Origin: Parasitella parasitica NRRL 2501
Taxonomy: Eukaryota; Fungi; Mucoromycota
DNA length: 64,000 nt
Assembly (NCBI GenBank): GCA_025201805.1
Contig: MU619248.1
Span: forward strand, 186,001-250,000
Reading direction: 5' to 3'
Both the position numbers and the translations under genes were made by a program. The notes beneath the pieces were generated by a model, which was given only the letters and a program-made list of their open reading frames with translations, did not search any database and was not told the DNA's origin. Positions 20,774 to 45,447 of the stretch are shown piece by piece; the first letter of the stretch is position 1; the number at the start of each line of letters is the position of its first letter.

Positions 20774-23700
20774 TTATCGCTTGGCCTTTCTAAGCAAAAA
20801 GACAAAGAACATAAAAGCAAAGATGTTAAAGACAGAATAGGCGCAGAGAATACCGAAATCACGCCATCTGTTGTCGAAACGCCAGCCAATTCTATCTTCA
20901 TAAAACTGGTTACCCATGGTGTAAGGACAATAGTTGCAGACATCAGTAGACGAGTTGTTGCTAATGTATCCATTTCCGCCAGCAGCAAAGAAGTCAGCCA
21001 TGTAATCACCACAGTTTGTGCCAGGAGGAGGGATAATCTTGGTAAAGTCACTATCACCACAATGAACTTCAACGCTATCCATGACATTAACCACAAGACC
21101 TTCAATCACATAGTGGTATGGATCCAACCAGTACATCCAGGCTCTCCAGAAATAAGGCATCGAGTTAGGAGGTTGCATAATACCAGCAAAAAGAATCAAG
21201 ATGGAGGTAAAGAAGGGATTAATGACAGCAGCCATAGGTGGAGTAGCAGAGAAGGCAGCAATCATGAAGCCCAGAGATACAGAATAGAACAAAAAGACTG
21301 TAAAGTGAATGTAGAAGAAGCCAACGCGATCAGAGACGTTTTGAAGACCTGCAGTCCAATAGAAACAGAACAAGAAGATAGCAGAAAAGACAATCAAGTA
21401 AGGAATCTCAACGAGGACGCAAGAAAGTGCAAACGGGGCCCAGCCATAGTACTTGGAAGCATATTCACGACGGAACCAAGAACGCTCTTGCATGAAACGA
21501 GGCTGAGCCAAGATAATCAAAGCATTGGACATCAAAAGAGTAGTAAAGACAGAGAACATACGGTTTTGCATGTCAGCAGGAGTGTTACCCAATTTCCAGA
21601 AACTGAAGCCAGAGATGAGACCAATGAAGCAGACATTGAAGAGCCTGCCCATATTGTAAGTAGGACAACGCCACCAAGAGACATTCATACGCTTGTATAC
21701 GAGCCAAAATTGTTGGGCAAAGGTGAGAGAATAAGCACTGTTGTGGTTATGCTTGCTAGAGTCAATGCTTTGGTGAATCTGTTCAAGTTCAGCATCCAGA
21801 GCCTTTGCTTGGTCAGAGGCAGTCCATACTTCAGACCAATCCTTGGTAGCCTTACCAGCAGTACCAGCACCAACACATTCAAGAATATATTCAGCAGGAT
21901 TAGCTTGAGGGGAGCATTTGGGTCCACCGTTGGATTCAAAGTAATCAATCATAGTACGAGAGTTGGGACCGATTTCACCACAATAAGCTGTCTTTCCGCC
22001 ACGGACCAAGAGGACGAGATGATCAAAATGTTCAAAAAGAGTAGCAGAAGGCTGATGAATGGTACAAAGCACCGGCCAACCAGCGTCTGCAAGCTTACGG
22101 ATAAAACGAACAATATTGAAAGATGATTGAGCATCAAGGCCGGAAGTAGGTTCATCCAAGAATAGAAGCTTGGGCTTGCCGACCAATTCAGTAGCAATAG
22201 TCAGACGCTTACGTTCTTCGACAGAGATACCAACGCCAGCTTCAAGATCGCCGACAAGCGCATCAGCGATTCTTTCCATCTCCATAAGACGAATGATTTG
22301 TTCAACATAAGAGTCCTTTTCTTCCTTGGGAACAGAGGCAGGTTGACGAAGATAAGCAGAGAATTTGAGAGCTTCGCGAACAGTAGCATTGGGATTGTGG
22401 ACATCCATTTGTTCACAATAACCGGTAGTACGCTCAAAATCAGGACCAAGAGGCTCACCATTCAAGTAGATGCGGCCTTCAATCTTGCCAATGGTCTTGC
22501 GCTTAGCCAACACGTCCAAGAGAGTCGTCTTACCAGCACCAGAGGAGCCCATCAATGCAGTCAAATGGCCAGGACGGACAATACCGCCAATGTCGTTCAA
22601 GAGCTTTAGCTTACCACCCTTGACAGGAACAGTGTAGTCCATATGGTGCCATGAGAATGTAGTACCGTCATCAACAGCTTCCATCTTTTCGTCGTTATCA
22701 ACAACAGTTTGTTCAAGAGCTTGGCTTTCATCAATTTCTTTGGGAGCACGACCAGCTTTGTAGACCTTAGTAATGGAACCTTCCTTCTGAAGGTCAATAT
22801 ATTCCATGGCAAGAGCAGTGAGAATAGTAAACAAAAAGAAGAAGAGCAAGACAGCGACAAAGTCGATCCAACGTTGCCAGGTTTCATAGCCGTACGCAGT
22901 ATGTAGATAGTCATCACCGAGAACATAGGTTTGGCCAGGCACAGCACCAGGAAGGTTACAGGTTTGATAGTCGGTGTTGTTGTAAGATGGACCATAAGGA
23001 ACAGAATTGTAGCCTTCACAAGTGAAATGCATGCCATGCAACTCGTTCGAGATCAAAGCCTTGTAGCCGTAAGCAAGAGGATTGATCCAGTATATCCACA
23101 TGAGCCAAGGATGCATTTGGTTATAGGGGATTTGGTAACCACAATACACAAGACAAGCAATCAGGAGAATACTAGACAGTTGAGAGGCAGTGAAGAAATT
23201 AGGAGACACAGCACCCCAGAAACGGAAGAAGCCATTCATACATAAATTGGTAACAACAAGGATGATAAAGAATGTAAAGAACTATCAAACAATAAAGTTA
23301 GTAAGATCTATAAAACCAGGACAAGTGATTGATAAACTTTACCTTTCCAGCATCAAGTACTAGACCCATCATAAAGTAGACACAAAGTTCAAACACAATA
23401 ACTTGAATAAGAGCCAAAGGTATATCAGCAATCACAGTGGCAATATAAAAGGCAGAAGGATGGTACAGAGCAAAATGCTTGTGCTTTTCAAGCACACGAC
23501 GGCCTTGCATGAAAGCAGACAATTCAGCTTGGGCAATCAAAGCATTAAACAAAAGAGAAAACAAGAATGAACCACCACGAGAGAAAGCACCACTGGCATC
23601 AGTAGGCATCATATAGAAGACGGAAGCCATGATAAGACCCTTTACAATAACACCACCATAACGAGAGATGAGAGCACCCTTGTCACCAAGAATTAGCTCA

Positions 23701-25229
23701 AATTGACGAACAGTAAGAGATTTGACCTGGTTGAAGTAAGTAGCCACAAAAGGAGAGTGTTTAGGAGCATACTTTTGATGAGCATCGAGGAAAGCTTGAC
23801 GAAACTTCTCGTCAGGACGGTCTTGGTTGATCTTTTGTTCATATTCATCGCGTTCTTTCATCATCTCAGTATACAGAGCAGATTCCTTGTAAGCCTTTTC
23901 AAATTGGACAGAATTAACAGGCACCTTGGACTTGTAACCTTCACGGTATTCACGCTCATTCATGTTACAGAGACCAGTCAAAAAATCTGGAATAGATTTA
24001 CGGTTAGGACAAAAGAAACCCATATCTTCAAAGTAGGCTTTAGCAGTGTTGGTGGGGCCAAAGTAGATACAGCGACCTTCGTCAAGAACCATAACCTTGT
24101 CAAAGAGATGGAAGATACTGTCGGAAGCCTGATAAAGAGTAGAGACGGTAGTTTTGTGCAAAATATCAGTCATGATTCGAAGCGAACGAACATAATCAAG
24201 AGCAGAAGAAGCATCCAAACCACGAGTAGCGCAATCCCAGCAATTGATAGAACTACGAGTAGTCATTTGTTCAGCAATAGAAAGACGCTTACGCTCGCCA
24301 CCAGAAAGACCACGCACAAAGGCATTACCAACCATAGTGTTCATTTGTTTAGTCAGACCAAGCATATTACCAAGCATGTACAGAATCTTGTTGATAAATT
24401 CACCCTTACTTTCACCATCTAGACGCTTACCGGGAGTCTTGTTTTTGAGAGCAAAACTCAGGGTTTGCTTACAGGTCAGAGTAGGATAATGGAGATCTTC
24501 TTCTTCGTTGTAGCAAACTTCGCCACGGAAATGTTTTGCAAATTCTTGAGCTTCAATGCCACCATAATGAACAGTGCCTTCAATGTTGGTATAAGAAGCA
24601 CGCATGTTGGCAATGACACGCAAAAGCGAAGAACAACCAGCACCAGGACGACCAAGCACCAGAAGCATCTCACCGTCTTTACAGAAACCATCGTTGCCCT
24701 TGAGGATAGTAAAGTCGTGACCTTCATGCTTTCCCCATTTCCAGAATTGAAGTGAATCACGGAGCCACGTATAGTTGGTAGGAATGACTTTAGCATCGGC
24801 ACCAAGGCCTTGTACAACCAAGTTTTTCCAAACAACGCCCATATGCTTGGGGTGAAAGCCTTGAGATTCACCGGATTCGGTTTGGTCCCGCAAAAAATCA
24901 GTTAAATCGAAATCTTTGACATCGCCCTCTTCAGCTTGACCAGGAGTCATTGATTTGCGACGAGAGATACGAGATTGCTGCGTTAACTCTCTGCGAATCT
25001 CTTCATAATTGGACATGGCTGCCTCAATGTTGACAGCATTACCTTCTGATTCACCAAATGCACCGCCATTGGGATAGTTTGCTGTAGATGTTTCATTGTC
25101 GCTGTTGATTTCTTCCTTACCGTGAACCTCGTCAATAGTAGATTCATCAGAAAAGTGGTTTCTATGTTGATATTCTTCATCACGATTGTGTCGCTCTTGC
25201 GGCATACCTTGCAAGGCTGGCATATCCAT
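20774..25229 (-). CDS. PDR-type (full-size ABCG) multidrug ABC transporter
   Basis: NBD1 degenerate Walker A GRPGAGCSS with LSGGERKR. NBD2 GSSGAGKTT, ISVEERKR, LFLDEPTSGLD, NPAEYIL. Two TMDs with cysteine-rich extracellular loops. One intron at ~23283-23342. Confidence 0.95.
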
Positions 25230-25962: not shown

Positions 25963-26850
25963 ATATCACCGTGGAATCGGCATCATGTCGGGAGAACCCC
26001 GATCACTTCCTAAATGGAAAATGGATCATAACTATATAAATCTATGATGCAAGAACAAAACACAATCGTGCCAATAATTTGTAGTTTTTATGCTTCAATT
26101 GATATATACAGTGAATATACATCACATTACATGCAAAATGAAGTTGTTGTATTAGTCTTCAGGAAAAATTGATAGATGTAAATTAATGAAAAGGAAAACG
26201 AGAATCGTTGTAACACACATTACATTGTAAGCAACATTTGTAGAGTACTATATTTTATTTGGATCTCTCCGCATCAAATTCATCTTAAATTCTGTTGCTT
26301 ACACGGTAGAACAAGGCCTGATGCCAAGTATTTCGTTCATGTAAAAATGTATACAAGGCAATTATTTCTGCATTCCTGTTTGATTTGCGTCTCACCACAA
26401 CATCAGTTTATTCATGAAACTACTGATAAGGTTTGTCTATCTGCCGGATGATTATTCTACCTATCGAATTTTCATTAGCCAAGAGCTGCCAAATTATTTC
26501 TTTTCTTGTTGCAGAAAGGAGAGCGAAGCACGATATTCAACATTATTACAGGATTTACTAGATATCAGATGTATAATATTTAATCTTTATTTATATTGTA
26601 TAATATTCCTGCTTATCAGATGCGTGTTGTCGTGATTTTCAATACCGAAATTGCATTTGAGCAAAGGTAGAAAGAACATGCACATGAGTTAAAAACACGT
26701 TTTATATGGTTTTATCTTTATCCCGAAAGTGACTCAAAAAAGAAGGTGATCCTCAACATTTTCCTTTCGCGTAGAATTGAATTGTTCTTCCAGCACTTTT
26801 TCAAGAGGCAACTTGAATAGCTGCTTTGGCAAATTATTATCATTGGTTGA
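25963..26850 (+). repeat. long direct repeat copy 1 (~888 bp; pairs with 33803-34691)
   Basis: Line-by-line identity at offset 7840 over 26001-26778. A few mismatches only in the first ~40 and last ~70 bp. Confidence 0.97.
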
Positions 26851-27148
26851 GATACGATTAAACAACAAATTTTATTATAAAAATTAAATATAAAAATAGC
26901 TGGTGAGCACAGAATAACCAAATGTATTGTGTTGCCCTAGCCAGTTCTGGTTGGAAGAGAAAGAAAAACCTCTTACGAGTAAAGAGGAAAATGAAATAAT
27001 TTAATAAGACCTAGAAGCAGTGAGGGAAAGGAGGGCACCACTATGATAGCCAGTTCGCCATTTTAACACCAGGCTGGGGAAGTTCAGAAGGAAGTTGATC
27101 ATGAAACAGATAATCCAGTTCATGTAAGAGAAAGCAGACAGAAGGCCT
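26851..27148 (-). mobile_element. 5'-truncated non-LTR retrotransposon 3' fragment (copy C) with 9-bp TSD
   Basis: Encodes PSVCFLLHELDYLFHDQLPSELPQPGVKMANWLS*, then a 3' UTR ending AATAAAATT..TTTAATCGTATC. Flanked by ATTGGTTGA at 26842-26850 and 27149-27157. Confidence 0.8.
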
Positions 27149-27154
27149 ATTGGT

Positions 27155-27933
27155 TGAGATACGATTAAAGAAGAATTTTATTAACTAAAAAATAATTAAA
27201 TGACTGTGAGCACATAGCATTTTTCATCTGCTGCATTGCCCTAGTCAGATCGCGTAGTTTATATGAAAGAAAAACCTTCCCAAAAGACAAGGAAAAAGAA
27301 AAAAGTATTAAAGTATTTAGAAAAAAAAAAAATAAAAAATAAAATAGAGAGATTTAGGAACAGAGCAAAGAGACATTAACACTTTTACACGAGCAACCAA
27401 TTCACCATAGAGGCACCAGGATCTTGTGGGGTAGAAGGAGGGACTTGTCCATGAAATAAATGATCCATTTCATGCATGATTCTGCAGATTTCAGGCCAAC
27501 GAACCGGCCAAGGGAAGGCTTGCTGGGGATTTCGTGGTTTTTTTGAAAGTAGATGATTCAATAAATATGATAGCGGATCATCAACTGATAGAGGCATTTG
27601 TAGTCGACTGTGCATATGAAGACATTCGATAGCATGTTTACGAGTAAAGTTTTCAAAAGGATGGTATATACAGGGACTAGGAATACCACCTGGCATATAC
27701 AGTATTTTTACTTTTGGAAGATTTCATTTATTTTCTGGACGAATTCACCTAGCTAATTTAGACAGATGTGATATATTTTTAGACGATTTTTTTTGTAGAC
27801 CTTTTTACTTGGAAATTTAAAGAATCACAAAATGGGCTTTATTCACTATACAGTGATTTGACGAAAGATATGGTAAAGGACTCTCCAAGCCGCGCTTTTT
27901 TTTTACTTGCAAAAAAATTTTAATATAAATAAT
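27155..27933 (-). repeat. left arm of long inverted repeat (pairs with 32453-33213)
   Basis: Reverse-complement match with a few substitutions and small indels. Consists of a LINE tail (27158-27696) plus ~235 bp of non-LINE sequence. Confidence 0.95.
27158..27696 (-). mobile_element. non-LTR retrotransposon 3' fragment (copy A', in left arm)
   Basis: PGGIPSPCIYHPFENFTRKHAIECLHMHSRLQMP...DPLSYLLNHL...RWPEICRIMHEMDHLFH resembles the Cys/His C-terminal domain of Mucorales LINE-like RT proteins, followed by the 3' UTR. Confidence 0.8.
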
Positions 27934-28035
27934 ACATGAAAGAATGATCACTTAATGGAATATGGATATAAGATATGGATATAACATGGATATAACATGA
28001 GAAGGTTATAGACATATCAATCACAAATATGATTA

Positions 28036-29735
28036 TTATTTTAAAAAGTATTCAGCAGTAGATTTGGATGGTAACTTTCTAAACCCGCAATTTTCATCCA
28101 GGATTAGACGATCCAATTTTCGTTGTTCAATTAATTCATTATAAATGGTAGCCAACATCTCGAAAATGATATTCCAGTTGCTTCGTAGCTCCCAGGATGT
28201 GGGGACACAAGCTGATCTCAGCTCCACAAGCCTCCATCTTCCTGCTTTTGTTAAGTTTAGTTTGGTTACTGTTAGGGTCTGCTTTATCACTTGTATACCA
28301 AATGTACACTTTTTCGTCATTGTTTCCATACTAGCTCTTTTGTTCTGTTTCAATATATGGAGTAACGAGTTGCTACATTCAACTAATAGCTTTAGGGTAT
28401 CATCCAGGGAGTGCCTTGTTATCTCATTATCAAATCCGCTGCTACATTCAATGAAAAGCTCTTCGTTGTTTGTTGTCCTAAACCATCCGCATATTTTCTA
28501 TCTGAGAAACTAATGACGAAGTCATTGCATTCGGAAACCGCTAAACCTTGTGATTCAATCATTTTCTCGCACCAGTAGAACTCTGTCAAATTAGATTCTT
28601 GACTTAAATATTTGAACATGGGGACAATGTATTTGACAAAAGGTGTACGCTCATGGTTGTTACTATTGCGCAATTCTTGTTTGCAATTTGAGCTGAAGTC
28701 TGTAAGAGTATAACAAACAATGTCCATGAACGTCCGAGTGGTACCAGTAGCTTCAAGTCTTTTTTCATGGTTCCAAAGCATTCTAATGAAATCTTCTTTA
28801 TCAGCACTTAATACATCTTGAATAAATTCAGTAACACCGGGAAAAGAGTCGAATGAAGCAAATTTATTTTGATCCACAACGTGACCCTTGTATTCATCCA
28901 TTGCTTCCTCGTTTTTATAATTATCGTCATCAATCAAGAACTCCATCCCAATTTCACAGAAATCTCTGATTTTCTCTCTATCAATGTATTGGATCTTCGG
29001 TTTATGTGGTGCTGTGAAGAATGTAGCTGGATTAAAAATGACGAATTTCTTTTGATTTTTATCCAACGTACAGGTCTGAAAGAAAAAAAGAAATTAATTA
29101 ATCGCGTGAATTAGCATTTTATATTTTCAAGTTACCTTTTTTGTAGGTGATGTGTATGTTGTTGTTTCTACTGTTGTTGAGATTCGAGTGGCTTCATCTT
29201 CTGTTGTTCCTGAGACTTGTGTGGCTGCCTCTTCTTCTGCTGTTGAGCCTGTTGTACCATCAATATATTGATCTTGGAATTCATTAAGGCCTCTCATTGT
29301 CAACGCATTTCCAAGTCTTTGTGCCTTTTCATACGCTTCTTGTCGTTCCTTTGCAATTTTTCTTTTTCTTACTCTTGGCTCATTCTCGTCTATCGTACGT
29401 TTGTATTCCTTGATAAAACGGTCTTTTGTTTTTCGAAGTGAGAAATAACTATACACTTTTTGAATAAATATATTGATATTTGAAGGCAGCGCTACCGACT
29501 GATCTTTGCTATTCATTGTATTATAAAGTGCGGCTTTAATATAGCTGTATATTTCCTCAGGATTGTCTTTCATCAATTCATCCTCTGGAATGCAATCAAT
29601 GTGGTATTGTAGATCGCCAAAGCTGCTAACTGGCATTGTCAAAATGTAGTTACATTCAGTAAACTTGTTTCGCACTTCTGGAGTTAGTGTATATTCTTTA
29701 TCACAATCGCGGGGGAATTTTGGGGAGCCAACCAT
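28036..29735 (-). pseudogene. frameshifted PD-(D/E)xK/REase-fold-like nuclease gene (Mucorales multi-copy family), 2 exons
   Basis: Exon 1 29735-~29135 joins in frame (GTAACT...TTTCAG) to exon 2. Motifs NHERTPFVKYIVPMFKYL, FYWCEK, KYADGLG, then a frameshift at ~28470 restores EELFIECSSGFDNEITRHSLDDTLKLL...FGIQVIK...LVELRSACVP to the stop at 28036. Confidence 0.65.
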
Positions 29736-29756
29736 TGTAAAAGTTACAGCAAAGAT

Positions 29757-29795
29757 AAAAACTTATCAAAATGACGGTCATTTTGATAAGTTTTT
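29757..29795. promoter_or_regulatory. perfect 19-bp inverted repeat with 1-nt spacer, 21 bp upstream of the nuclease-like ATG
   Basis: AAAAACTTATCAAAATGAC-G-GTCATTTTGATAAGTTTTT. The palindrome is certain; the regulatory role is inferred. Confidence 0.6.
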
Positions 29796-29885
29796 CAATT
29801 TCGTCTGTTACGTCATCAATAACTAAACCATTTATGATTTATTTTTTTTACACACCAGTGTAATATTTTTACTTTTCACATCGTT

Positions 29886-30196
29886 AAGCCTTATAAAATT
29901 CCAAGAGGATCCACCCATCTTGGTCCTTGGTTAATAGAGATAAAAGCCAGCCTCTCAAGGATTGGGATGGTCCCTGCAACTCTTGGTGAGGTATGCAATA
30001 GTTGGCGCGGGCTTGCTGACGACCTGTTACGATGTATTATTACCTAGCTTTGAAAGCCTTATAAAATTCCAAGAGGATCCACCCATCTTGGTCCTTGGTT
30101 AATAGAGATAAAGGCCAGCCTCTCAAGGATTGGGATGGTCCCTGCAACTCTTGGTGAGGCATGCAATAGTCGGCGCGGGCTTGCTGACGACTTGTT
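29886..30196 (+). repeat. tandem duplication, ~143-bp unit at 168-bp period
   Basis: 29886-30028 vs 30054-30196 with 4 substitutions. Confidence 0.95.
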
Positions 30197-30779
30197 CAAA
30201 TGTCTAGGTAAAACAAAGAAACTTGCTGGGTTTACAAGGTACTTATATATAGAAGACAAATTTCAAGTATAATTATTAATACTTATTTGATGTGCTGTTG
30301 TACAATGAATGTACGAGGAATTAAAATTTAGGTAAAGCTTAGTATGTCTTATCAATATTTGAAGTATAATCTCAATTTCGACATTTATGAAATTAAGATA
30401 CATGGAATAATCAAAGTGGAAAATAAACCATACGTGATGATCAGGAGAAATAAAGATAATAAAGATTGGATGAAAAAAAGGTTATTTTATTCACTTCTGT
30501 AAGTATCGTTATCTCTTAACGAAAAGCATCAATATTTTCCATTAATTGCTCTGTTTACACTGTACTAAATTTTCTTTTTTTGACCTCCTTAGTGTTATGC
30601 ATCATGTTACGAGCAAAACTGTTTCTTTTCTTCTTTTTTTTCTTGTATTTAAGTGAAGACTCATCAAACTTTAATAATAATAAAAAAAAACTTAAATGAA
30701 TTAGCCTTTCATCGTATCATTTTTGTCAGAAGAGTCTGATGGCAAACGTTTTGTATCAAGCAAACTTTGGGATATCATT

Positions 30780-31528
30780 ACATGGCTCAGTAGCTAATAT
30801 TAATAGGACATAACGAGTTGGAGGATACCGATGAGGCGATCTTAGTATATCAATTTAGTATGTTGACGTGCTTCTTCTGATAAAGTAGATAGTGTAAGGC
30901 TGCAGAGTTTTAGAAGGATCGGTTGGTCAAATTTAGGAATGGAGATATTGAAGTTTTCCAGTTGGGTGTAGACATGATTGTTATAATCCTCATGGGTGAG
31001 AAGGCTTATATCAAGGATATAATTGTATTTTTTTTATGTTAAGCGAATCTAGAGAATTTGTGTCGAGAGAGGGTTTGTGCTTGGAACGTAATCGTGTGTT
31101 GATGGGATTGGCTGTCAATATTTTGGGTTTTGGTTTAGATATTTTACAATATCCACATTGGTAATACTCCGTTCGAGGTGTTTGCTTGCGTTGGCATATT
31201 ATCTACATACCCTATCCTATTTTCAAGTTAATGAACGGTATCTTTTAAAGGGATAATATTATGATATGCAGAGCAATTCTACATAATTTTGTGATAGTTT
31301 AATCTTTACGGTTGAGGAAAATGTTGTTGGGTCCAAGTCTTTTTTTTAGATAGACCTTCTATCCAGGCATAGTGGAAGTATAGTAGTAATTTGGAGCGCC
31401 ACAAGAAGCTTGTTCATGACGTCGTCTACCTTCATGAAGGATGTACCTTTCTGTTACTTCTTGTAACCGGGTGTAATGTTGGATTAAAAAAAAGGATGTT
31501 TCTGTTTAGACTCCTCTTGATCTGACAT
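30780..31528 (-). pseudogene. decayed ORF of unknown family inside the cargo
   Basis: MSDQEESKQKHPFFLIQHYTRLQEV...CGAPNYYY...* ...EYYQCGYCK...LLKLCSLTLSTLSEEARQHTKL with stops and frameshifts. Confidence 0.35.
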
Positions 31529-32452
31529 ACTGTATTGTTTTATAAGTAGGTGGATGGAGGTGTTGTTGAAATAAGTTTTAATATGAACCTAATTTGCTAG
31601 AAGTTATATTTATAGCGGAAGACCCAAAGTATTGTGTGTTCTTTTTAGATGAAAATGTTGAAAGATAGAGATTGTGGAAAACCATAAGATATCTTAATCT
31701 TATTTTGTTCTAATAAATGCTCTCCAGAACACGCCAGTAACATCAAGTCAGGTTTTTAATGAATATACAATATCTAAAAACAACAAAGAGATTTTTGTTA
31801 ATTCATGAATAAACGTTGGTTGCTAAATGAAACGAAATTACCTTTGTTTGTTTGTTTGTTTCTCTCTCTCCATGATAATATATTGATTGTGTTATCCATA
31901 GTCTGCTTCTTCCTTTCCTGAAAGCGGAATCTTCATTTTCTTGAATGGATGTCTCCATAAAAGTTCAAATAATTTCAGCAATACACTTGAATCAATCAGT
32001 GCATGATATCATCGCAACTCTATTGATCTCTTTCCAAAAAAAGTAATTCCTAAACTTAATGATGAATGCAAGTCTACTTACAAAATAACTTGTAAATCAT
32101 ATCTGTAACACCAAGTATAAAAATGATATCTTAGGCTTGAGCGAAACCGATATGATCCATATTGACTCACTTCAGGAACACATCAACAAGTAGATCTACT
32201 TCCTCGTTGGGTTAATGAGACTTTATCATATATATCTTCAATTCATAATCGTAAAAAATACTCGTGTCACTTTCCAAAAAAATTGTTTGCAGGACGTACC
32301 TATTCCAATACTTGTTGCCTCCGTTAGTACTCCAGATACAATGGTAAAACCCAACCCATCAGCTCCCCTCCCTTGGTATAGAAGAAGTTTAGACTTGATA
32401 TAAAACATGACGTCTTAGAAAGTCATTAAGAAGAAGACTCATTTAAACTTGA

Positions 32453-33213
32453 ATTATTTATATTAAAAAGCGCGGCTTGGAGAGTCCTTTACCATATCTT
32501 TCGTCAAATCACTGTATAGTGAATAAAGCCCATTTTGTGATTCTTTAAATTTCCAAGTAAAAAGGTCTACAAAAAAAATCGTCTAAAAATATATCACATC
32601 TGTCTAAATTAGCTAGGTGAATTCGTCCAGAAAATAAATGAAATCTTCCAAAAGTAAAAATACTGTATATGCCAGGTGGTATTCCTAGTCCCTGTATATA
32701 CCATCCTTTTGAAAACTTTACTCGTAAACATGCTATCGAATGTCTTCATATGCACAGTCGACTACAAATGCCTCTATCAGTTGATGATCCGCTATCATAT
32801 TTATTGAATCATCTACCTTCAAAAAAACCACGAAATCTCCAGCAAGCCTTCCCTTAGCCGGTTCGTTGGCCTGAAATCTGCAGAATCATGCATGAAATGG
32901 ATCATTTATTTCATGGACAAGTCCCTCCTTCTACCCCACAAGATCCTGGTGCCTCTATGGTGAATTGGTTGCTCGTGTAAAAGTGTTAATGTCTCTTTGC
33001 TCTGTTCCTAAATCTCTCTATTTTATTTTTTATTTTTTTTTTTTCTAAATACTTTAACACTTTTTTCTTTTTCCTTCTTGTCTTTTGGGAAGGTTTTTCT
33101 TTCATATAAACTACGCGATCTGACTAGGGCAATGCAGCAGATGAAAAATGCTATGTGCTCACAGTCATTTAATAATTTTTTATTTAATAAAATTCTTCTT
33201 TAATCGTATATCA
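32453..33213 (+). repeat. right arm of long inverted repeat (pairs with 27155-27933)
   Basis: Reverse-complement match to the left arm. Confidence 0.95.
32669..33210 (+). mobile_element. non-LTR retrotransposon 3' fragment (copy A, in right arm)
   Basis: Same 5' truncation point as A'. TGG>TAG stop at 32855-32857. Ends TTTAATCGTATA. Confidence 0.8.
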
Positions 33214-33219
33214 TCGTGG

Positions 33220-33805
33220 TCGATGGCGTCTTGGCTGGCTTCCAGGTGGCAAACCACGTCCTTGCCCTTTCCACCCGACAACTAATCTCTCTCGTGCTCA
33301 CGTTACTGACTGTCTGCAGATACATCGCCGACTTCAGTTGCCTGAATCTATCCAAGACCCTCTTTCTTTCCTGCTTAACTTATTGCCACTGAGACACCCA
33401 CAAATGCTCAATACGGAGCTTCCTGGGCAGTCCGTTGGCCTGCAATCTGCTTGATCCTATCATATTTTCCACAATGAAGACGTTCCTCCGGCTCCTCCTC
33501 ATATCGGTACTAGTTTGGTAGAATGGTTGCATAGGTAAAGGCTGCTAGTGTTTCTAACCTGTTTCTGGATTTTTTCATTTTATTTCTCCTCTTTTATACT
33601 CTTTCATTTCAACTTATATTTGTTTCATTTATAATTTCTTACCTCTTCCATACTTTTTTCGTTTTCCCTCTTGACTCTTCAGAGGGTCTTTTCTTTCCTT
33701 CCACTTGGCAAACTGGTCCGGGCAATGCAGTTATTCCAACTATTGTGATCATTATGACCATTTTTATTTTTCTTTATTCAATAAAATTTCTCATTTAACC
33801 GTATA
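33220..33805 (+). mobile_element. 5'-truncated non-LTR retrotransposon 3' fragment (copy B, different subfamily) with 9-bp TSD
   Basis: RWRLGWLPGGKPRPCPFHPTTNLSRAHVTDCLQIHRRLQLPESIQDPLSFLLNLLP...WAVRWPAICLIL (frameshifted). Ends AATAAAATT..TTTAACCGTATA. TCATCGTGG at 33211-33219 and 33806-33814. Confidence 0.82.
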
Positions 33806-34691
33806 TCATCGTGGAGTCGGCATCATGTCAGGAGAACCCTGATCACTTCCTAAATGGAAAATGGATCATAACTATATAAATCTATGATGCAAGAACAAAA
33901 CACAATCGTGCCAATAATTTGTAGTTTTTATGCTTCAATTGATATATACAGTGAATATACATCACATTACATGCAAAATGAAGTTGTTGTATTAGTCTTC
34001 AGGAAAAATTGATAGATGTAAATTAATGAAAAGGAAAACGAGAATCGTTGTAACACACATTACATTGTAAGCAACATTTGTAGAGTACTATATTTTATTT
34101 GGATCTCTCCGCATCAAATTCATCTTAAATTCTGTTGCTTACACGGTAGAACAAGGCCTGATGCCAAGTATTTCGTTCATGTAAAAATGTATACAAGGCA
34201 ATTATTTCTGCATTCCTGTTTGATTTGCGTCTCACCACAACATCAGTTTATTCATGAAACTACTGATAAGGTTTGTCTATCTGCCGGATGATTATTCTAC
34301 CTATCGAATTTTCATTAGCCAAGAGCTGCCAAATTATTTCTTTTCTTGTTGCAGAAAGGAGAGCGAAGCACGATATTCAACATTATTACAGGATTTACTA
34401 GATATCAGATGTATAATATTTAATCTTTATTTATATTGTATAATATTCCTGCTTATCAGATGCGTGTTGTCGTGATTTTCAATACCGAAATTGCATTTGA
34501 GCAAAGGTAGAAAGAACATGCACATGAGTTAAAAACACGTTTTATATGGTTTTATCTTTATCCCGAAAGTGACTCAAAAAAGAAGGTGATCCTCAACATT
34601 TTCCTTTCGCGTAGAATTAAAATTGTTCTTCCAGCACTTTTTCAAGAGGCACCTTGAATAGCTGCTTTGGCAAATTATTGTCATTGGTTGA
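33803..34691 (+). repeat. long direct repeat copy 2 (pairs with 25963-26850)
   Basis: See copy 1. Ends at CATTGGTTGA. Confidence 0.97.
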
Positions 34692-40746: not shown

Positions 40747-43700
40747 CGAATGTTCTTTATCAAGGCCAGCGTATTTTCCCTCCATCATTTGTTTACGTGT
40801 AGTTGTTCAATATATGTATCATTGTTGCCGTTTTTTATTGAAATAAAAGAAGCATTAATTTCCAATGTAAATTATAACATTTTGTCTTATATTCAAATGA
40901 TGGAGTATCTGTAATTAGAGATTATCAAACATACTCCTTGAATTAATTAGGTACTTTATCCCTGTTCTCATGGCTTAAAAGAGAAATGACTGGTTTGACA
41001 AAAACAGTGTACAAGTGTTAGCTCATAGCTACCAAGTCAATTGATTGTCTGGTCAATGTTGCTATTAGCATCACAAAGAAGCTGCTTAGCAGATTATTTA
41101 AGAATAATAGAAAAACAATGTCTCAACCCGAAATCGTTGAATAGGGCGTATGAAATACATTCACTAAACCAGAGGGCTTTTGTTGACAAAAAAAATATGA
41201 CTAAAATATATCCTAATCAATGTCTATCTACTCATAACATTCGATGTTTGACAGGAAGTATCTGCAGCAAAACGCAGTAAAAAAGCAAGATACGATTAAA
41301 ACCCTTCTTTATTTTAAATGTAGATTGATTGTGCAGTAAGCTGTTATTTTACATCTCTATTTATATTATATGGGTGTCGTCTTACTAGCAGACAATTGTA
41401 TTGTTATTTCTTAACAGTTCTGTTATTCTTTATGTTGTGTTATAAATTCTAATCAGCCGTTCTGGCTTAGTAGTATACTATCATACTACTTGGGTTGATT
41501 AGAGATGGTCATTTATTGAGTTGTTTATTGACGTTGTTGATCTAATGATGGATCAAGGATGGCATTTTAAACATGCTTTTATTTATATAGGTTATACAAC
41601 AAAGGCTACACGTCTTTGATCTGATAGTGCCTTAACCTTTATCCTGGTGCTCAGATCTGTGTTATTTACAGGAATAACCTTCTTGATTTGAAACAGAGAC
41701 TTTATTCTCCAATTTACACAAGCGTATCACACATATTGGACACTCTTCAATCTTCAATCGAAGTACATTGCCACACTCTCCTGTCTATAATTATGGCAGA
41801 TCAATCCCCTTGCTGCACTACAAGAAGAAAAGTAAAATGCACTGCATCAGCGCTAATAAACATGGTACTTTTCATTTTTCGAAATGTATATCGAATTAAT
41901 CTTTGTGTTAAAAAACATATATTTTCCATTAAAACGTTCCAAAATTAAGTTGAAGACGTATTGCGCTCCTACAATCATAGGAAAAAAACAGTGAGGGGAT
42001 TCATTTCAGTCAACATGAGATTTCAATTATTATTAAAAATTGCATTATAAAACTATGGGTACAATCAAATTATTGATGTGATGGATTGTTTGGGCAACTG
42101 CATGCATTTGTATCTACTCAGAATATAAGGTGTTTTTGCTGCGAAACAAAAACGTCAAAAATCCCAAGATCAAAGCCAATTGAAAGCCAATTGAAATATG
42201 AAAAGGTGCTTTTAAAGCCCAATGTAATCTATATAGTTTGATGCACAATTTTAAGGCGGACAAAAAACAGTTAGCAAACATATGCAATACTATACCTCTT
42301 ATTTCTTGAGATACCATGCAATGAAAATTTAGGATGTGCGCAAGTTGCAATCGAAACATATTTCTGAGCTTGAATTCACCACTGCAAATACAAGCTTTTA
42401 GCAGTGAAGCACCTTTTTCAATCGAGGAGCAAAACATGACCTCCATAAGCAATATGGTTATGTCTTAATATGAATCAATAGCCAAGATGCTGTAAAATAT
42501 GACTTCAAAAGCTATTTTTATGTAGCTTTTTGACTTGGTTAAATAAATGCCCCTTAATCATAAATACCATCTTTTGCCCCGCTTAAAGGCCCATAATGCA
42601 ATTTCTGATATCTTTACAAACTATTAAGTGATAGTGATACAACCTTCAGCCAAAATCTTCTTTTTTTGCACAATTCTACAACATATTTGAGTTTCATGCA
42701 TATCTGACCACTTTTCAGATTTTGCTATGTTTGGACCCCAAACCTCAGATTTGATTTTCAATTTTCGACTTTGAGTCGACCTTCAGGGTCATTTTCAGGT
42801 ACGGATTTGAGGTCCAAACAAAGGATACAGACTAATACTAGTATGATAACTGCACATCATTACGTCTTCCGATTCCCGATATCTATCTTTACTGTCGAGA
42901 TATTGCCAAAACTAGATTTTGCAGATTTAGCAGATTTTACAGCATATGTTCTTATAATAAGTACCATATTTGGTAACTAAACCAAGTTTAAGTTTTTAAG
43001 TAAAGTAATAAAGCACGTTTTTTTACACCTACTAGTTTTAAAAATGTTGCATTTAAGCTCGAATTTGAAAAGCTTAAGCCAATTTTGACTTTTTACGTTA
43101 AACTTTGTTCTCCAGTTTCTCAACAAACCATTAAGACACTTTGGCTTGAGGTATTATTAAAATCTTTTTGAAACTTGATTCTCTACTAGATGTATTAGTT
43201 TTTAAATGAATAGGTAGAAAAAAATATTTTCTCATATATTTTTAGCAGAGGCTTAATTTATTTTCATAAATTTCAGAGCAATAAATGGAATATAAAGATA
43301 CATGATATAGCAATACAAAAATAGAGCTACAATATAGCTACCGAAAGGTTTTTGTTTAGTCAAAAAATACCAATTTCTGAGCGAGAAAAGCTTGAAAAAC
43401 CGAGTTGATTTTTATCCTTTTGGATGGCTTCATTTTGGCCCTCCAAGTATAGGACCGGAAAATTGTAGATTCATTTTGGTCGAGACAAGATTTTGAATTT
43501 TGGCAAATATATTAAAGTTACAGTTGTGAACAAAATATTGATGTGTAGACATTGACATGATGGCTTGTTTGATTAACTTTATATACCTGAATGTGCTCAA
43601 AATATGCTTGATTTTACTCAAAAACTATCAAAAAAGGCGTTTTTTGAATATTTGAAAATTGGTAATAAGAAAAGGTGTTTCTGTAATGTTGTAATTTATA

Positions 43701-45447
43701 TGGCTGGATGCAGAATTTACTCTTTGTAATAAAACACTTAGTATGCATATCCGATATACCTATTGCGTTTATGAGATATCCAGCAATAAACTATGCAAAA
43801 AAAGGCTCGAAACTGGTTTGGGTCAAATGGAAACACAGTGCTGAGATTCAATCTACAGCCTCTTTTTTGGCTATAAATGAAGGCACCGCCGATTTTCAAT
43901 TTAAGAGCAAAGCATGATTTTACTACGTAACTTGCGTATGTCTCCATATGAATTCATACCTGATATGCTGCATAATGCGGCTCAAAAACCATTTTTATAT
44001 ACCTTCATTTTTGGATGAAATAAATACCACCAGATCTGAAACATTACCTTTTCCCCCTCCTTAAAGGCATAATTTGCAATCACTGCATAAATTTGGTAGC
44101 TGTCGCCATAGCAATCCGTACTCTGATAGATCAGCATTTATGTCAATCAATAAATGGACAGTAGATATGCTGGACCTCTATTCATCACCAAGCTAATTTT
44201 CTTTCAACTGATATGTCTAAAATTCGAGAAGAAATGTATGCTGTGTATGCACTAAAACTTTATAAAATATAATAATAACAAAAACACAGCAAAATAAACA
44301 CAATCCAACGAGGAATAGAGTTTATTTAATTCCCATTCAAGTTTCGAAGTTTAATCAAATATATCTCATTTTCAAAACTAATTAAAAATATATAGAAGCT
44401 TTAGAAAACTATAAAAAAATATGTGCGTATGCAATAAAGCATGAAATAGATGGTTATGTATTTTGATTTGAAATAAAAGCACTTTCAAAAGAGTAAATCA
44501 TGTTAAAATTCGGGCGAAATAGCTTGAATCAACCATTAGGAGTTACGAAATTCAAAAAAGGCGATATTTTAAGCTGAACACTCCGTTTTATTTAATAATA
44601 TGTTTAATATGTTAATAATGTATATAAATGCATGTCGATCCACCGGTACATCTTTTTTTTTTTTTTTTTTTTTTTTTTTGCGGTAGTAGTAATAAAAACA
44701 TTTATACAGAAGTGTGGTAGAAACATCTGTTGGCATTTCAAAATAGTAATGTAGAGCATGTCATAAACGTTTTATGTAACTCGGCCTAATTAACGTACTC
44801 CAAGTCAGAGATGAATTGATATGATTCAACTTTCCTTAGCTAGTAAATCTTGGGTTAGGTGGGAGAGATCGTCCATCTTTGGCTGCTGTAATTCCATAAA
44901 TGATAGTTAAACAATGACCCTAAAACAAGAAAAATTGGATAGCATTGCACACAAACATATTAATTTTTTATATGTAAAAGTGGCTAATGCACAAAAAAAG
45001 AAAAAGGCCCAATAGCGTTTTCAATATTGATTTCTTAATATTGCCAACCAAGCTTGGCGGAGGGGTCCACAAAGAATAAAAGCTCGGTGTAAATAGTCAG
45101 AAATATTGGATGAGAATAGTTCGATGGTTCAATGGAGATATTTGACAGCTTATGCAAAAAAGTTTATGATCTTTTTACTCGGTATTTCTGCAACAAAAAA
45201 AAACTGAAACTTTTTTTTTCTTTTTTTTTTTTTCAATGACAAGCCACTGGTATGAGATTTTTTCCTCTTTCTTGAAAGGATATAACTTTGACGTGAAAGG
45301 TATTTGTATTACCAAGTAATTCTTTTCCTTTTACAAACTCCTTTTAAACAAGGTAAATATCTAACACCCAGAGTTCCATTTTATTCTTTTTATTTCAGCA
45401 ATTTTTATTTTCGACTGTAAAGAAACAAAGCATCAAAAAAGTAGGAT

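Follow-up and report, generated by a model that had tools for sequence, protein, structure and literature searches.

A foreign segment of about 6 kb, bounded by two LINE tails with outward-facing 3' ends and by two 885-bp copies of host DNA, lies in the genome of the fungus Parasitella parasitica NRRL 2501 (assembly GCA_025201805.1, contig MU619248.1), raising the question of whether it is a copy of a mobile element or the product of one insertion. It is intergenic, flanked by ABCF3 and by the gene of a PDR-type ABC transporter, and falls in the 64-kb stretch analysed here (positions 186,001 to 250,000 of the contig; hereafter the window, from whose first base positions are counted). The original prediction saw in it a retro-mobilised, double-headed gene carrier; our analyses indicate that a single complex LINE-driven insertion between these two genes is the most likely origin.

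Repeat finding and self-BLAST confirmed the predicted order DR1, LINE C, arm L, cargo, arm R, LINE B and DR2 (Table 1). The direct repeat (25963-26850 and 33803-34691) aligns over 889 columns with 99.1% identity, the three bases from 25963 being ambiguous microhomology with the LINE tail end. The inverted arms (27155-27900 and 32465-33213) are 98.7% identical over 749 bp and reach 27933 and 32453 (up to 779 bp) once an 18-21-bp indel is crossed. Apart from these two pairs, repeats of comparable size are absent from the window.

Table 1. Features of the insert and its duplicated host segment (X). T, LINE part of an arm; N, non-LINE part.
Feature	Position	Strand	Remarks
Host segment X, copy 1 (DR1)	25966-26850	.	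885 bp; 99.1% identical to copy 2
LINE C, 5'-truncated tail, later insert at X/arm L junction	26851-27148	-	From sequence
Arm L, overall	27158-27933	-	T and N parts
Arm L, T	27158-27696	-	Last 539 nt of LINE; 3' end at 27158, toward DR1
Arm L, N	27697-27933	-	Inner ~90 bp natively continuous with cargo
Cargo, single-copy, transposon-like	27934-32452	- (orientation of own gene and arm L)	Unique in genome
Cargo gene	28036-29735	-	Two exons, retained intron, one frameshift
Arm R, short inverted copy	32453-33210	+	N 32453-32671; T 32672-33210
LINE B, 5'-truncated tail, later insert at arm R/X junction	33220-33805	+	Second LINE subfamily
Host segment X, copy 2 (DR2)	33806-34691	.	Repeat comparison with copy 1

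Repeats of 0.75-0.9 kb are difficult for short-read assemblers, and the original prediction had itself called for a check against misassembly or a haplotype merge; the evidence makes such an artefact highly improbable. Logan contigs from three runs in three studies, probably representing one strain, reproduce the DR1/LINE C, LINE C/arm L and arm L/cargo junctions of the left half without differences, and the DR2/right-flank junction is found in two of these runs (X2 and X3) as a loose end. Contig depth relative to the cargo is 1.3-1.6x for the contig holding the repeat core and 1.45-2.1x for the non-LINE part of the arms (~1.3-2x for the shared parts), consistent with two copies of each. Furthermore, the repeat copies differ at fixed positions, a different LINE (B or C) is nested at each junction, and six runs contain ~90% of the words sampled across the full 9.9 kb. 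To the extent that contigs can resolve it, the structure is real and not an assembly artefact.

The tails at this locus (298, 539, 539 and 586 bp) share the 3' junction end ...CGTAT(A/C) and are variably truncated at the 5' end. The family codes for an endonuclease of the APE type and for a reverse transcriptase, a full-length copy on contig C51 containing Exo_endo_phos and RVT_1 domains. The intact 3' ends, the variable truncation, these two encoded enzymes and the flanking target duplications (9 bp each at LINE B and LINE C, 885 bp at the main insert) are those of target-primed insertion by an APE-type LINE. Each arm consists of ~220-235 bp of non-LINE DNA followed by an identical 5'-truncated 539-bp LINE tail, with its 3' end on the repeat side. 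Three longer copies (L003, L004 and L007) continue as LINE sequence upstream of the point where both arms become unrelated DNA, so that truncation point and non-LINE part are common to both arms, as had been proposed. Between the T part of arm L and the other genomic copies, identity is 91-94%, with 94% for the closest.

The junction sequences also bear out the proposal that LINE C and LINE B are re-insertions with 9-bp target duplications (ATTGGTTGA on the + strand at 26842-26850 and 27149-27157 for LINE C; TCATCGTGG at 33211-33219 and 33806-33814 for LINE B). LINE C is ~70% similar to the other tails; LINE B is 90-97% identical to other copies, the maximum of 97% being reached only across stretches of 32-63 bp. 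LINE B is younger than the main event. An order in which LINE B came first was rejected, since the duplication would then include it. A TCA after each LINE tail, as originally claimed, is confirmed at the two independent target sites of the insert but not beyond them: six further tails of the family in this genome, and another in the window (41300, - strand), are followed by other bases, and TCA is not a general target rule for this LINE family. A second pair of outward-facing tails, on contig C11, showed no long duplication in a test for flanking repeats.

Comparison with related genomes supports the prediction of an empty ancestral site. In relatives whose ABCF3 is 79% identical, the PDR gene follows ABCF3 after 1.68 kb, in the same orientation and without the cargo. 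With the insert removed, the spacing here is 106 + 888 + 734 = 1728 bp, and the agreement of this 1.73-kb remainder with the 1.68-kb gap of the relative indicates an insertion accompanied by a duplication. A relative with an 88%-identical ABCF3 gave a weak alignment across the DR2/right-flank boundary. Within the species an empty-site strain was not found, runs X1-X3 being identical to the window.

The original prediction treated the arms as equivalent units, and the inner junctions contradict this. A related contig (L064) aligns without a break at 88% identity from 29759 down to 27843, running from the cargo into ~90 bp of arm L; because it is continuous across their border, arm L and the cargo form one segment. 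Arm R, in contrast, is a short inverted copy that lacks 18-21 bp relative to arm L, and its junction with the cargo at 32452/32453 is novel. This asymmetry fits two cDNAs of unequal length, made from one RNA in the event itself, better than the originally envisaged transcription of an already palindromic element in sense and antisense. Neither remnant 9-bp duplications nor flank fragments are present at 32452/32453.

A retro-mobilised family should have left further copies, and here too the prediction was not borne out. Cargo and N are absent elsewhere in the 32.7-Mb genome, N occurring only in the two arms, and no other copy has these ends. A donor locus for a chimeric RNA was not found in the genome, and small ORFs that begin at the N/T junction, used to look for one, matched only the organism's own proteins. 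Nothing in the analysis shows a new mobile-element family, and we see about an even chance that the double-headed shape is the product of a single event and not a property of such a family. Two classifications of N were rejected: a SINE-like N-plus-T family, since N is confined to the two arms, and a transposon terminal inverted repeat, since only the arm L/cargo junction is native.

The cargo is 85-91% identical to DNA of Rhizopus stolonifer and R. delemar, compared with 68-81% for host genes, and its homologues in these two species lie in other gene neighbourhoods. The cargo is transposon-like, and its family is clearly mobile between Mucorales genomes. Arms of N plus tail are absent beside the cargo copies of R. 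delemar, R. stolonifer and run X24, where these could be examined. The cargo gene comprises exon 1 (29735-29136), a retained 59-nt GT-AG intron (29135-29077) and exon 2 (29076-28036), with one frameshift near 28467-28473 relative to the intact copy in L064; with an interrupted frame and its intron in place, it makes the term gene carrier too strong. Sequence searches used the exons separately. The protein family has 434 representatives at E <= 0.001, with the nearest clusters in Mucoromycota, and a Pfam search of the exons found no domain and no transposase domain or signature. The AlphaFold model (pLDDT 91) aligned with the nuclease domains of DrdV, BpuSI and TT1808 (VIA-align Z of 9.9, 8.8 and 7.4, respectively), and the conserved columns include D154, E170 and K189; on this model, the C-terminal domain is predicted to adopt a restriction-endonuclease-like PD-(D/E)xK fold.

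How could a LINE have produced this arrangement? We put at roughly one in two the chance that two opposite-strand nicks 885 bp apart each primed reverse transcription of one chimeric RNA and that the resulting cDNAs were joined. The LINE endonuclease would have cut at both edges of X, nicking the bottom strand on the left (25965/25966) and the top strand on the right (26850/26851), and both 3'-OH ends would have primed on RNA with one chimeric 3' part, consisting of N followed by the last 539 nt of the LINE. A long cDNA of ~5.3 kb would account for arm L and the cargo, and a short cDNA that stopped after ~0.76 kb for arm R, their ends being joined at 32452/32453. X would have been duplicated by the filling of two 885-nt single-stranded overhangs or by the joining of sister-chromatid ends, and the LINE B and LINE C tails would later have inserted at both regenerated nick sites with ordinary 9-bp duplications. 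The RNA template, the simultaneous primings and the joining step are inferred, whereas the data directly show the anatomy, the ancestral adjacency of the two genes, the single-copy status, the continuity of arm L with the cargo and the later nested insertions. Two target-primed reverse transcriptions duplicating the interval, as originally suggested, are the most economical account, both outer junctions being LINE 3' end/target junctions on opposite strands and 885 bp apart. The truncation point and N/T junction common to both arms indicate that they copy one template, and the later LINE B and LINE C insertions represent the family's normal product, a 9-bp duplication, at exactly the same phosphodiesters.

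Several observations weigh against paired priming. The donor is missing, N and the cargo are unique, and the nearest tail copy is only 94% identical; two primings on one rare RNA would be a coincidence unless one RNP or RNA served both ends; and the 885-bp stagger is ~100 times the family's normal 9 bp. With its 59-nt intron kept in the presumed RNA orientation, the cargo gene cannot derive from a processed mRNA, and the model must assume a read-through transcript that was not spliced. The repeat copies differ at eight positions, all in the first 38 or last 72 bp, with none in the central 778 bp, a pattern compatible either with mutagenesis close to the junctions or with gene conversion that homogenised an old structure; polarising these differences with the 88% relative, which is too diverged for the purpose, gave a mixed signal. 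Under an improbable variant, paired priming would have directly installed a cargo-plus-tail RNA, or a cargo RNA onto which a resident LINE reverse transcriptase switched, that had crossed from a Rhizopus-like host, possibly entering through the cytoplasmic bridge of this fusion mycoparasite. RNA-level transfer would account at once for the absence of a donor, for a cargo 91% identical to Rhizopus DNA when host genes reach only about 68-81%, and for a closest LINE copy that matches the arm tail at no more than 94%.

A stepwise history at the DNA level is unlikely, although not negligibly so: a cargo-plus-tail LINE insertion would have come first, and the second arm and the duplication of X would have been added later. 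Break repair, unequal exchange between sister chromatids or homologues, and replication template switching could each have served. The retained intron favours DNA over mRNA, and derived changes seem, against a weak outgroup, to be present in both repeat copies, which would suit an older history with gene conversion. However, arm R joins X in a precise tail-3'-end/target junction at the other edge of X from that joined by arm L, so the junction is not a DNA-level inverted copy of its counterpart; the clean junction at 32452/32453 likewise speaks against such a history, and the paths considered predict inward-pointing tails at a single X or extra cargo copies, neither of which is present. Four schemes were rejected: an inverted DNA duplication of the arm L junction, since the arms adjoin different edges of X; two ordinary insertions, which would leave inward-pointing tails at a single X; classical twin priming, since the terminal 760-776 nt, 3' end included, are present in both arms; and hairpin (snap-back) second-strand synthesis, which would duplicate the 5' end of the RNA and not its 3' end.

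We assign a low probability to the locus being one copy of a non-autonomous double-headed retroelement that always moves by paired target-primed reverse transcription, its transcripts from both strands ending in the LINE tail. Among the sequencing runs that contain the stretch, none is an RNA run. The architecture is compatible with such an element, its donor could lie outside this genome given the mobility of the cargo family, and the seven positions at which the arms differ in their tail parts, against none in the repeat core, could represent divergence already in the donor. Yet no second copy of N, cargo or inner junction exists in 32.7 Mb, one inner junction is native while the other is novel with a deletion, the Rhizopus and X24 cargo copies lack the arms where examinable, and a founding event resembling paired priming would still be required. 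Inverted ends of this length, together with the nuclease-like fold of the cargo gene product, might also suggest a DNA transposon with 770-bp terminal inverted repeats, an extremely remote prospect: the ends are LINE 3' tails, no other copy shares the ends of the insert, the duplication is 885 bp instead of the short fixed length of a TIR (DDE) transposon, and the frameshifted gene belongs to a protein family without a known transposase signature.

Insertion by paired priming would have partial parallels elsewhere. Penelope-like elements carry inverted partial copies at their 5' end, thought to result from priming at both target strands; the inverted terminal arrangement is alike, but these elements have another reverse transcriptase, a GIY-YIG endonuclease, an inversion that recurs across copies and short target duplications. 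LINEs of the stringent type trans-mobilise SINEs in dependence on the LINE tail, and a U6-L1 chimeric retrocopy case is cited in PMC11702581. Like these, the present insert has non-LINE sequence upstream of a 5'-truncated LINE 3' part, with the tail meeting the need of the reverse transcriptase; unlike them, it has no copy family, and its non-LINE part extends over 4.7 kb and includes an unspliced gene. In L1 twin priming, as outlined in bioRxiv 10.1101/2024.08.27.596794 (after Ostertag and Kazazian 2001), the second primer anneals inside the same RNA, giving a 5' inversion, an unduplicated 3' end and a target duplication of 12-18 bp. Both systems prime from both target 3'-OH ends and join inverted cDNAs, but here the RNA 3' terminus is in both arms and the duplication is 885 bp. 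In L1-induced human cells, double insertions in opposite orientation were attributed to the ligation of opposite RT-extended DNA ends, and the insertion sites can show small tandem duplications mediated by L1 (Mendez-Dorantes et al. 2024, PMC11702581). There too, two RT-made ends at endonuclease-type sites are linked head to head, and duplication of host DNA can accompany this. Those events are somatic, in L1-expressing human cells, and usually involve two different RNAs with poly(A) tails, whereas the present event, in a Mucorales fungus, is an inherited one that involves a specific, non-poly(A) LINE tail and the use of one chimeric template twice.

If paired priming holds, this locus would be an inherited fungal example of a process documented mainly in human cancer and L1-overexpression systems, combining two LINE-primed ends in one insertion with a duplication ~100 times the usual length and reuse of the same nick sites. 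It would also mean that LINE activity can give a compact fungal genome long inverted repeats as well as segmental duplications. That the cargo is much more similar to Rhizopus than host genes are is a separate hint of horizontal transposon transfer, all the more interesting because this parasite undergoes fusion with other Mucorales; were the RNA itself to have crossed, the transfer would have been horizontal at the RNA level. Finally, paired priming would imply that a LINE without a poly(A) tail can carry kilobases of foreign sequence. The tail of this LINE contains a stem-loop with compensatory changes between subfamilies, in a small sample.

The direct repeat and inverted arms on which the original prediction was built were both recovered by a repeat search and by self-BLAST of the window. 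The direct repeat of host segment X (DR1, left, 25963-26850; DR2, right, 33803-34691) spans 889 columns at 99.1% identity, and the inverted arms (27155-27900 and 32465-33213) align over 749 bp at 98.7% identity, a match that extends to 27933 and 32453 past an 18-21-bp indel. LINE B and LINE C sit exactly at the two junctions of the main event, each with its own duplication, and are therefore ordinary nested insertions that postdate it. Three longer LINE copies from elsewhere in the genome (L003, L004 and L007) continue to align with one another upstream of the point at which both arms switch to unrelated sequence; each arm thus combines a non-LINE part (N) of about 220-235 bp with a 539-bp LINE tail (T) that is truncated identically in both arms.

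Features of the insert (read base by base), of the gene in its cargo and of the flanking host genes, in window positions
Feature	Position	Strand	Remarks
PDR-type ABC transporter	20774-25229	-	left flank gene
Host segment X, DR1	25966-26850		885 bp
LINE C	26851-27148	-	9-bp duplication on both sides, ATTGGTTGA on +
Arm L	27158-27933		
Cargo	27934-32452		
Cargo gene, exon 1	29735-29136		two-exon gene
Cargo gene, intron			59-nt, GT-AG, retained
Cargo gene, exon 2	29076-28036		
Arm R	32453-33210		
LINE B	33220-33805	+	TCATCGTGG on both sides
Host segment X, DR2	33806-34691		885 bp
ABCF3	34797 onward	-	right flank gene

Of the words sampled from the 9.9-kb region, some 90% are present in six public sequencing runs. 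In a check with short-read contigs covering the left half, the contigs of three runs from three studies reproduce the DR1/LINE C, LINE C/arm L and arm L/cargo junctions with zero differences, and the DR2/right-flank junction appears as a loose end at 26850 in the contigs of two of the three. Set against the cargo, depth is 1.3-1.6x for the contig containing the repeat core; for N it is 1.45-2.1x. Since these runs look like one strain, they back the assembly and are silent on polymorphism.

The empty site that the original prediction sought in sister strains is supported from relatives. In the contigs of a relative with a 79%-identical ABCF3, 1.68 kb separates this gene from the PDR gene, which follows it in the same direction, and no cargo-like sequence lies between the two; the spacer here, minus the insert and one copy of X, amounts to 106 + 888 + 734 = 1728 bp. 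A second relative, at 88%, aligns weakly but continuously over the DR2/right-flank boundary. This spacing and this alignment indicate that left flank-X-right flank was probably the empty site.

Both outer junctions place the 3' end of a tail against the target, on opposite strands, and the later insertions of LINE B and LINE C show that the same phosphodiesters are used by this LINE family. The best available explanation, to which we give about even credence, is paired priming, in which the two primed ends would have been joined to each other and not each to its own reciprocal end, so that the interval was duplicated and the order X, tail out ... tail out, X arose. The N/T boundary common to both arms suggests that both cDNAs, one of 5.3 kb and one of 0.76 kb, would have been copied from the same chimeric RNA species. 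The event would be a variant of twin priming, differing in that the second primer begins at the 3' end of the RNA, and it matches a class described for human L1, in which reverse transcriptase extends each of two opposite DNA ends before they are ligated, alongside small tandem duplications where insertions occur (PMC11702581; bioRxiv 10.1101/2024.08.27.596794). Had the two nicks received ordinary insertions independently of each other, the tails would point inward at a single X, which differs from the observed order. Against paired priming, the same rare RNA would have to serve twice and the stagger is very long. No donor locus for the chimeric RNA was found in the 32.7-Mb assembly, where N and cargo are confined to this locus, and a processed mRNA template is ruled out by the intron retained in the cargo gene.

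The original prediction had gone further, reading the same opposite-strand tails and duplicated target as a double-headed gene carrier, mobilised by retrotransposition and of unfamiliar architecture. We consider this very improbable: a search across the 32.7-Mb assembly found N and cargo at this locus only, and the arms are asymmetric. Between 29759 and 27843 the window matches a related Logan contig, L064, at 88%; the match crosses the left end of the cargo without a break, reaches about 90 bp into N of arm L and includes the 18-21 bp missing from arm R. Arm L and cargo are therefore one continuous minus-strand segment in the order cargo, N, T. Arm R is a short inverted copy of the last 0.76 kb of this segment and meets the far end of the cargo at a new junction (32452/32453) that shows no clear microhomology. 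Because L064 departs from N beyond about 27843, the ~145 bp at the outer end of N may come from the flank of a donor locus.

All eight differences between the repeat copies fall near the ends, within 38 bp of the left one or 72 bp of the right one (25966-26003, 26779-26839 and their DR2 equivalents), with none in the central 778 bp, a clustering with a probability of about 5e-8 under a uniform spread. This points either to mutagenic repair near the junctions or to an older structure whose core was homogenised by gene conversion. One difference (C at 25969, T at 33809) predates LINE B, since T occurs in both copies of the LINE B duplication. The arms differ by seven substitutions and one indel in T and by none in N. 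LINE B, although younger than the main event, reaches at best 97% identity to other copies, and just over 32-63-bp stretches; together with the arm differences, this leans towards a main event that is not very recent.

The cargo gene carries one frameshift near 28467-28473, as measured against the intact L064 copy. With each exon queried separately and no joined model, a Pfam search gave no match, and the C-terminal domain proved to be part of a large family, which has 434 representatives at E <= 0.001 and its nearest Atlas clusters in Mucoromycota; diverged paralogues are present in the P. parasitica genome. The AlphaFold model of this domain (pLDDT 91) resembles restriction-endonuclease-like nuclease domains (Z 9.9 for DrdV, 8.8 for BpuSI and 7.4 for TT1808, followed by many restriction enzymes); Foldseek by itself gave weak matches.

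In nucleotide alignments the cargo matches R. delemar at 91%, R. stolonifer at 85% and L064 at 91% over 1.1 kb, the intron being part of the match, and the 85-91% span (window 28630-30827; L058, L059 and L064) takes in the intron and upstream DNA. The P. parasitica cargo resembles R. delemar and L064 more closely than R. delemar and L064 resemble one another, and two variants (90-93%) occur in run X24, from a diverged relative. In contrast, identity to the P. parasitica genome is just 68-81% for the host genes located on those Rhizopus contigs, and the gene neighbourhoods of the Rhizopus homologues differ from that found here. These comparisons argue for a transposon-like cargo that is probably horizontally mobile, and make the similarity to Rhizopus a candidate case of horizontal transfer of a transposon. 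P. parasitica lives as a mycoparasite that fuses with other Mucorales, and it serves as a laboratory model for horizontal transfer to Absidia glauca (PMC4807231).

Within the cargo, 29886-30203 holds two ~150-bp units, 95% identical at a spacing of 168 bp; X24 has one copy (its joint skips 30008-30178), and contig C86 of P. parasitica carries an 83%-identical copy. The R. delemar homologue of the cargo gene (L059:7950-8760) is broken at the equivalent of window 28660 by an interruption containing, among other sequence, a LINE C-terminal fragment with a poly(A) tail; homologue and interruption are joined in the public gene model, for which one source gives the name reverse transcriptase zinc-binding protein.

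A full-length relative of the arm LINE on contig C51 codes for an APE-type endonuclease and a reverse transcriptase, and the closest copy to T in the 32.7-Mb assembly is 94% identical. The tails end in ...CGTAT(A/C) without poly(A). TCA, proposed to follow every LINE tail, is not general, as other bases follow seven other family tails. The LINE 3' UTRs have in common a predicted stem-loop, placed some 45-95 nt before the end (33084-33210, 33676-33805, 26854-26985 and other tails), and on its 3' side a conserved AT-rich stretch that closes with TTTAA(T/C)CGTAT. Compensatory changes between tail subfamilies at 7 of its 15 pairs, in a small sample, would fit tail-specific recognition. Among the seven tails not followed by TCA is one in the window (41201-41310, minus strand), which ends at about 41300, near a direct-repeat pair (41968-42615 and 43440-44094; 650 bp, 61% identical). 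A second outward-facing tail pair of the same family lies on contig C11 (G000:C11:152962-158400; L009, L023, L003), where a long flanking direct repeat was sought and not found; here the pair consists of a 163-bp inverted tail fragment and, about 4.8 kb downstream of it, a longer copy.
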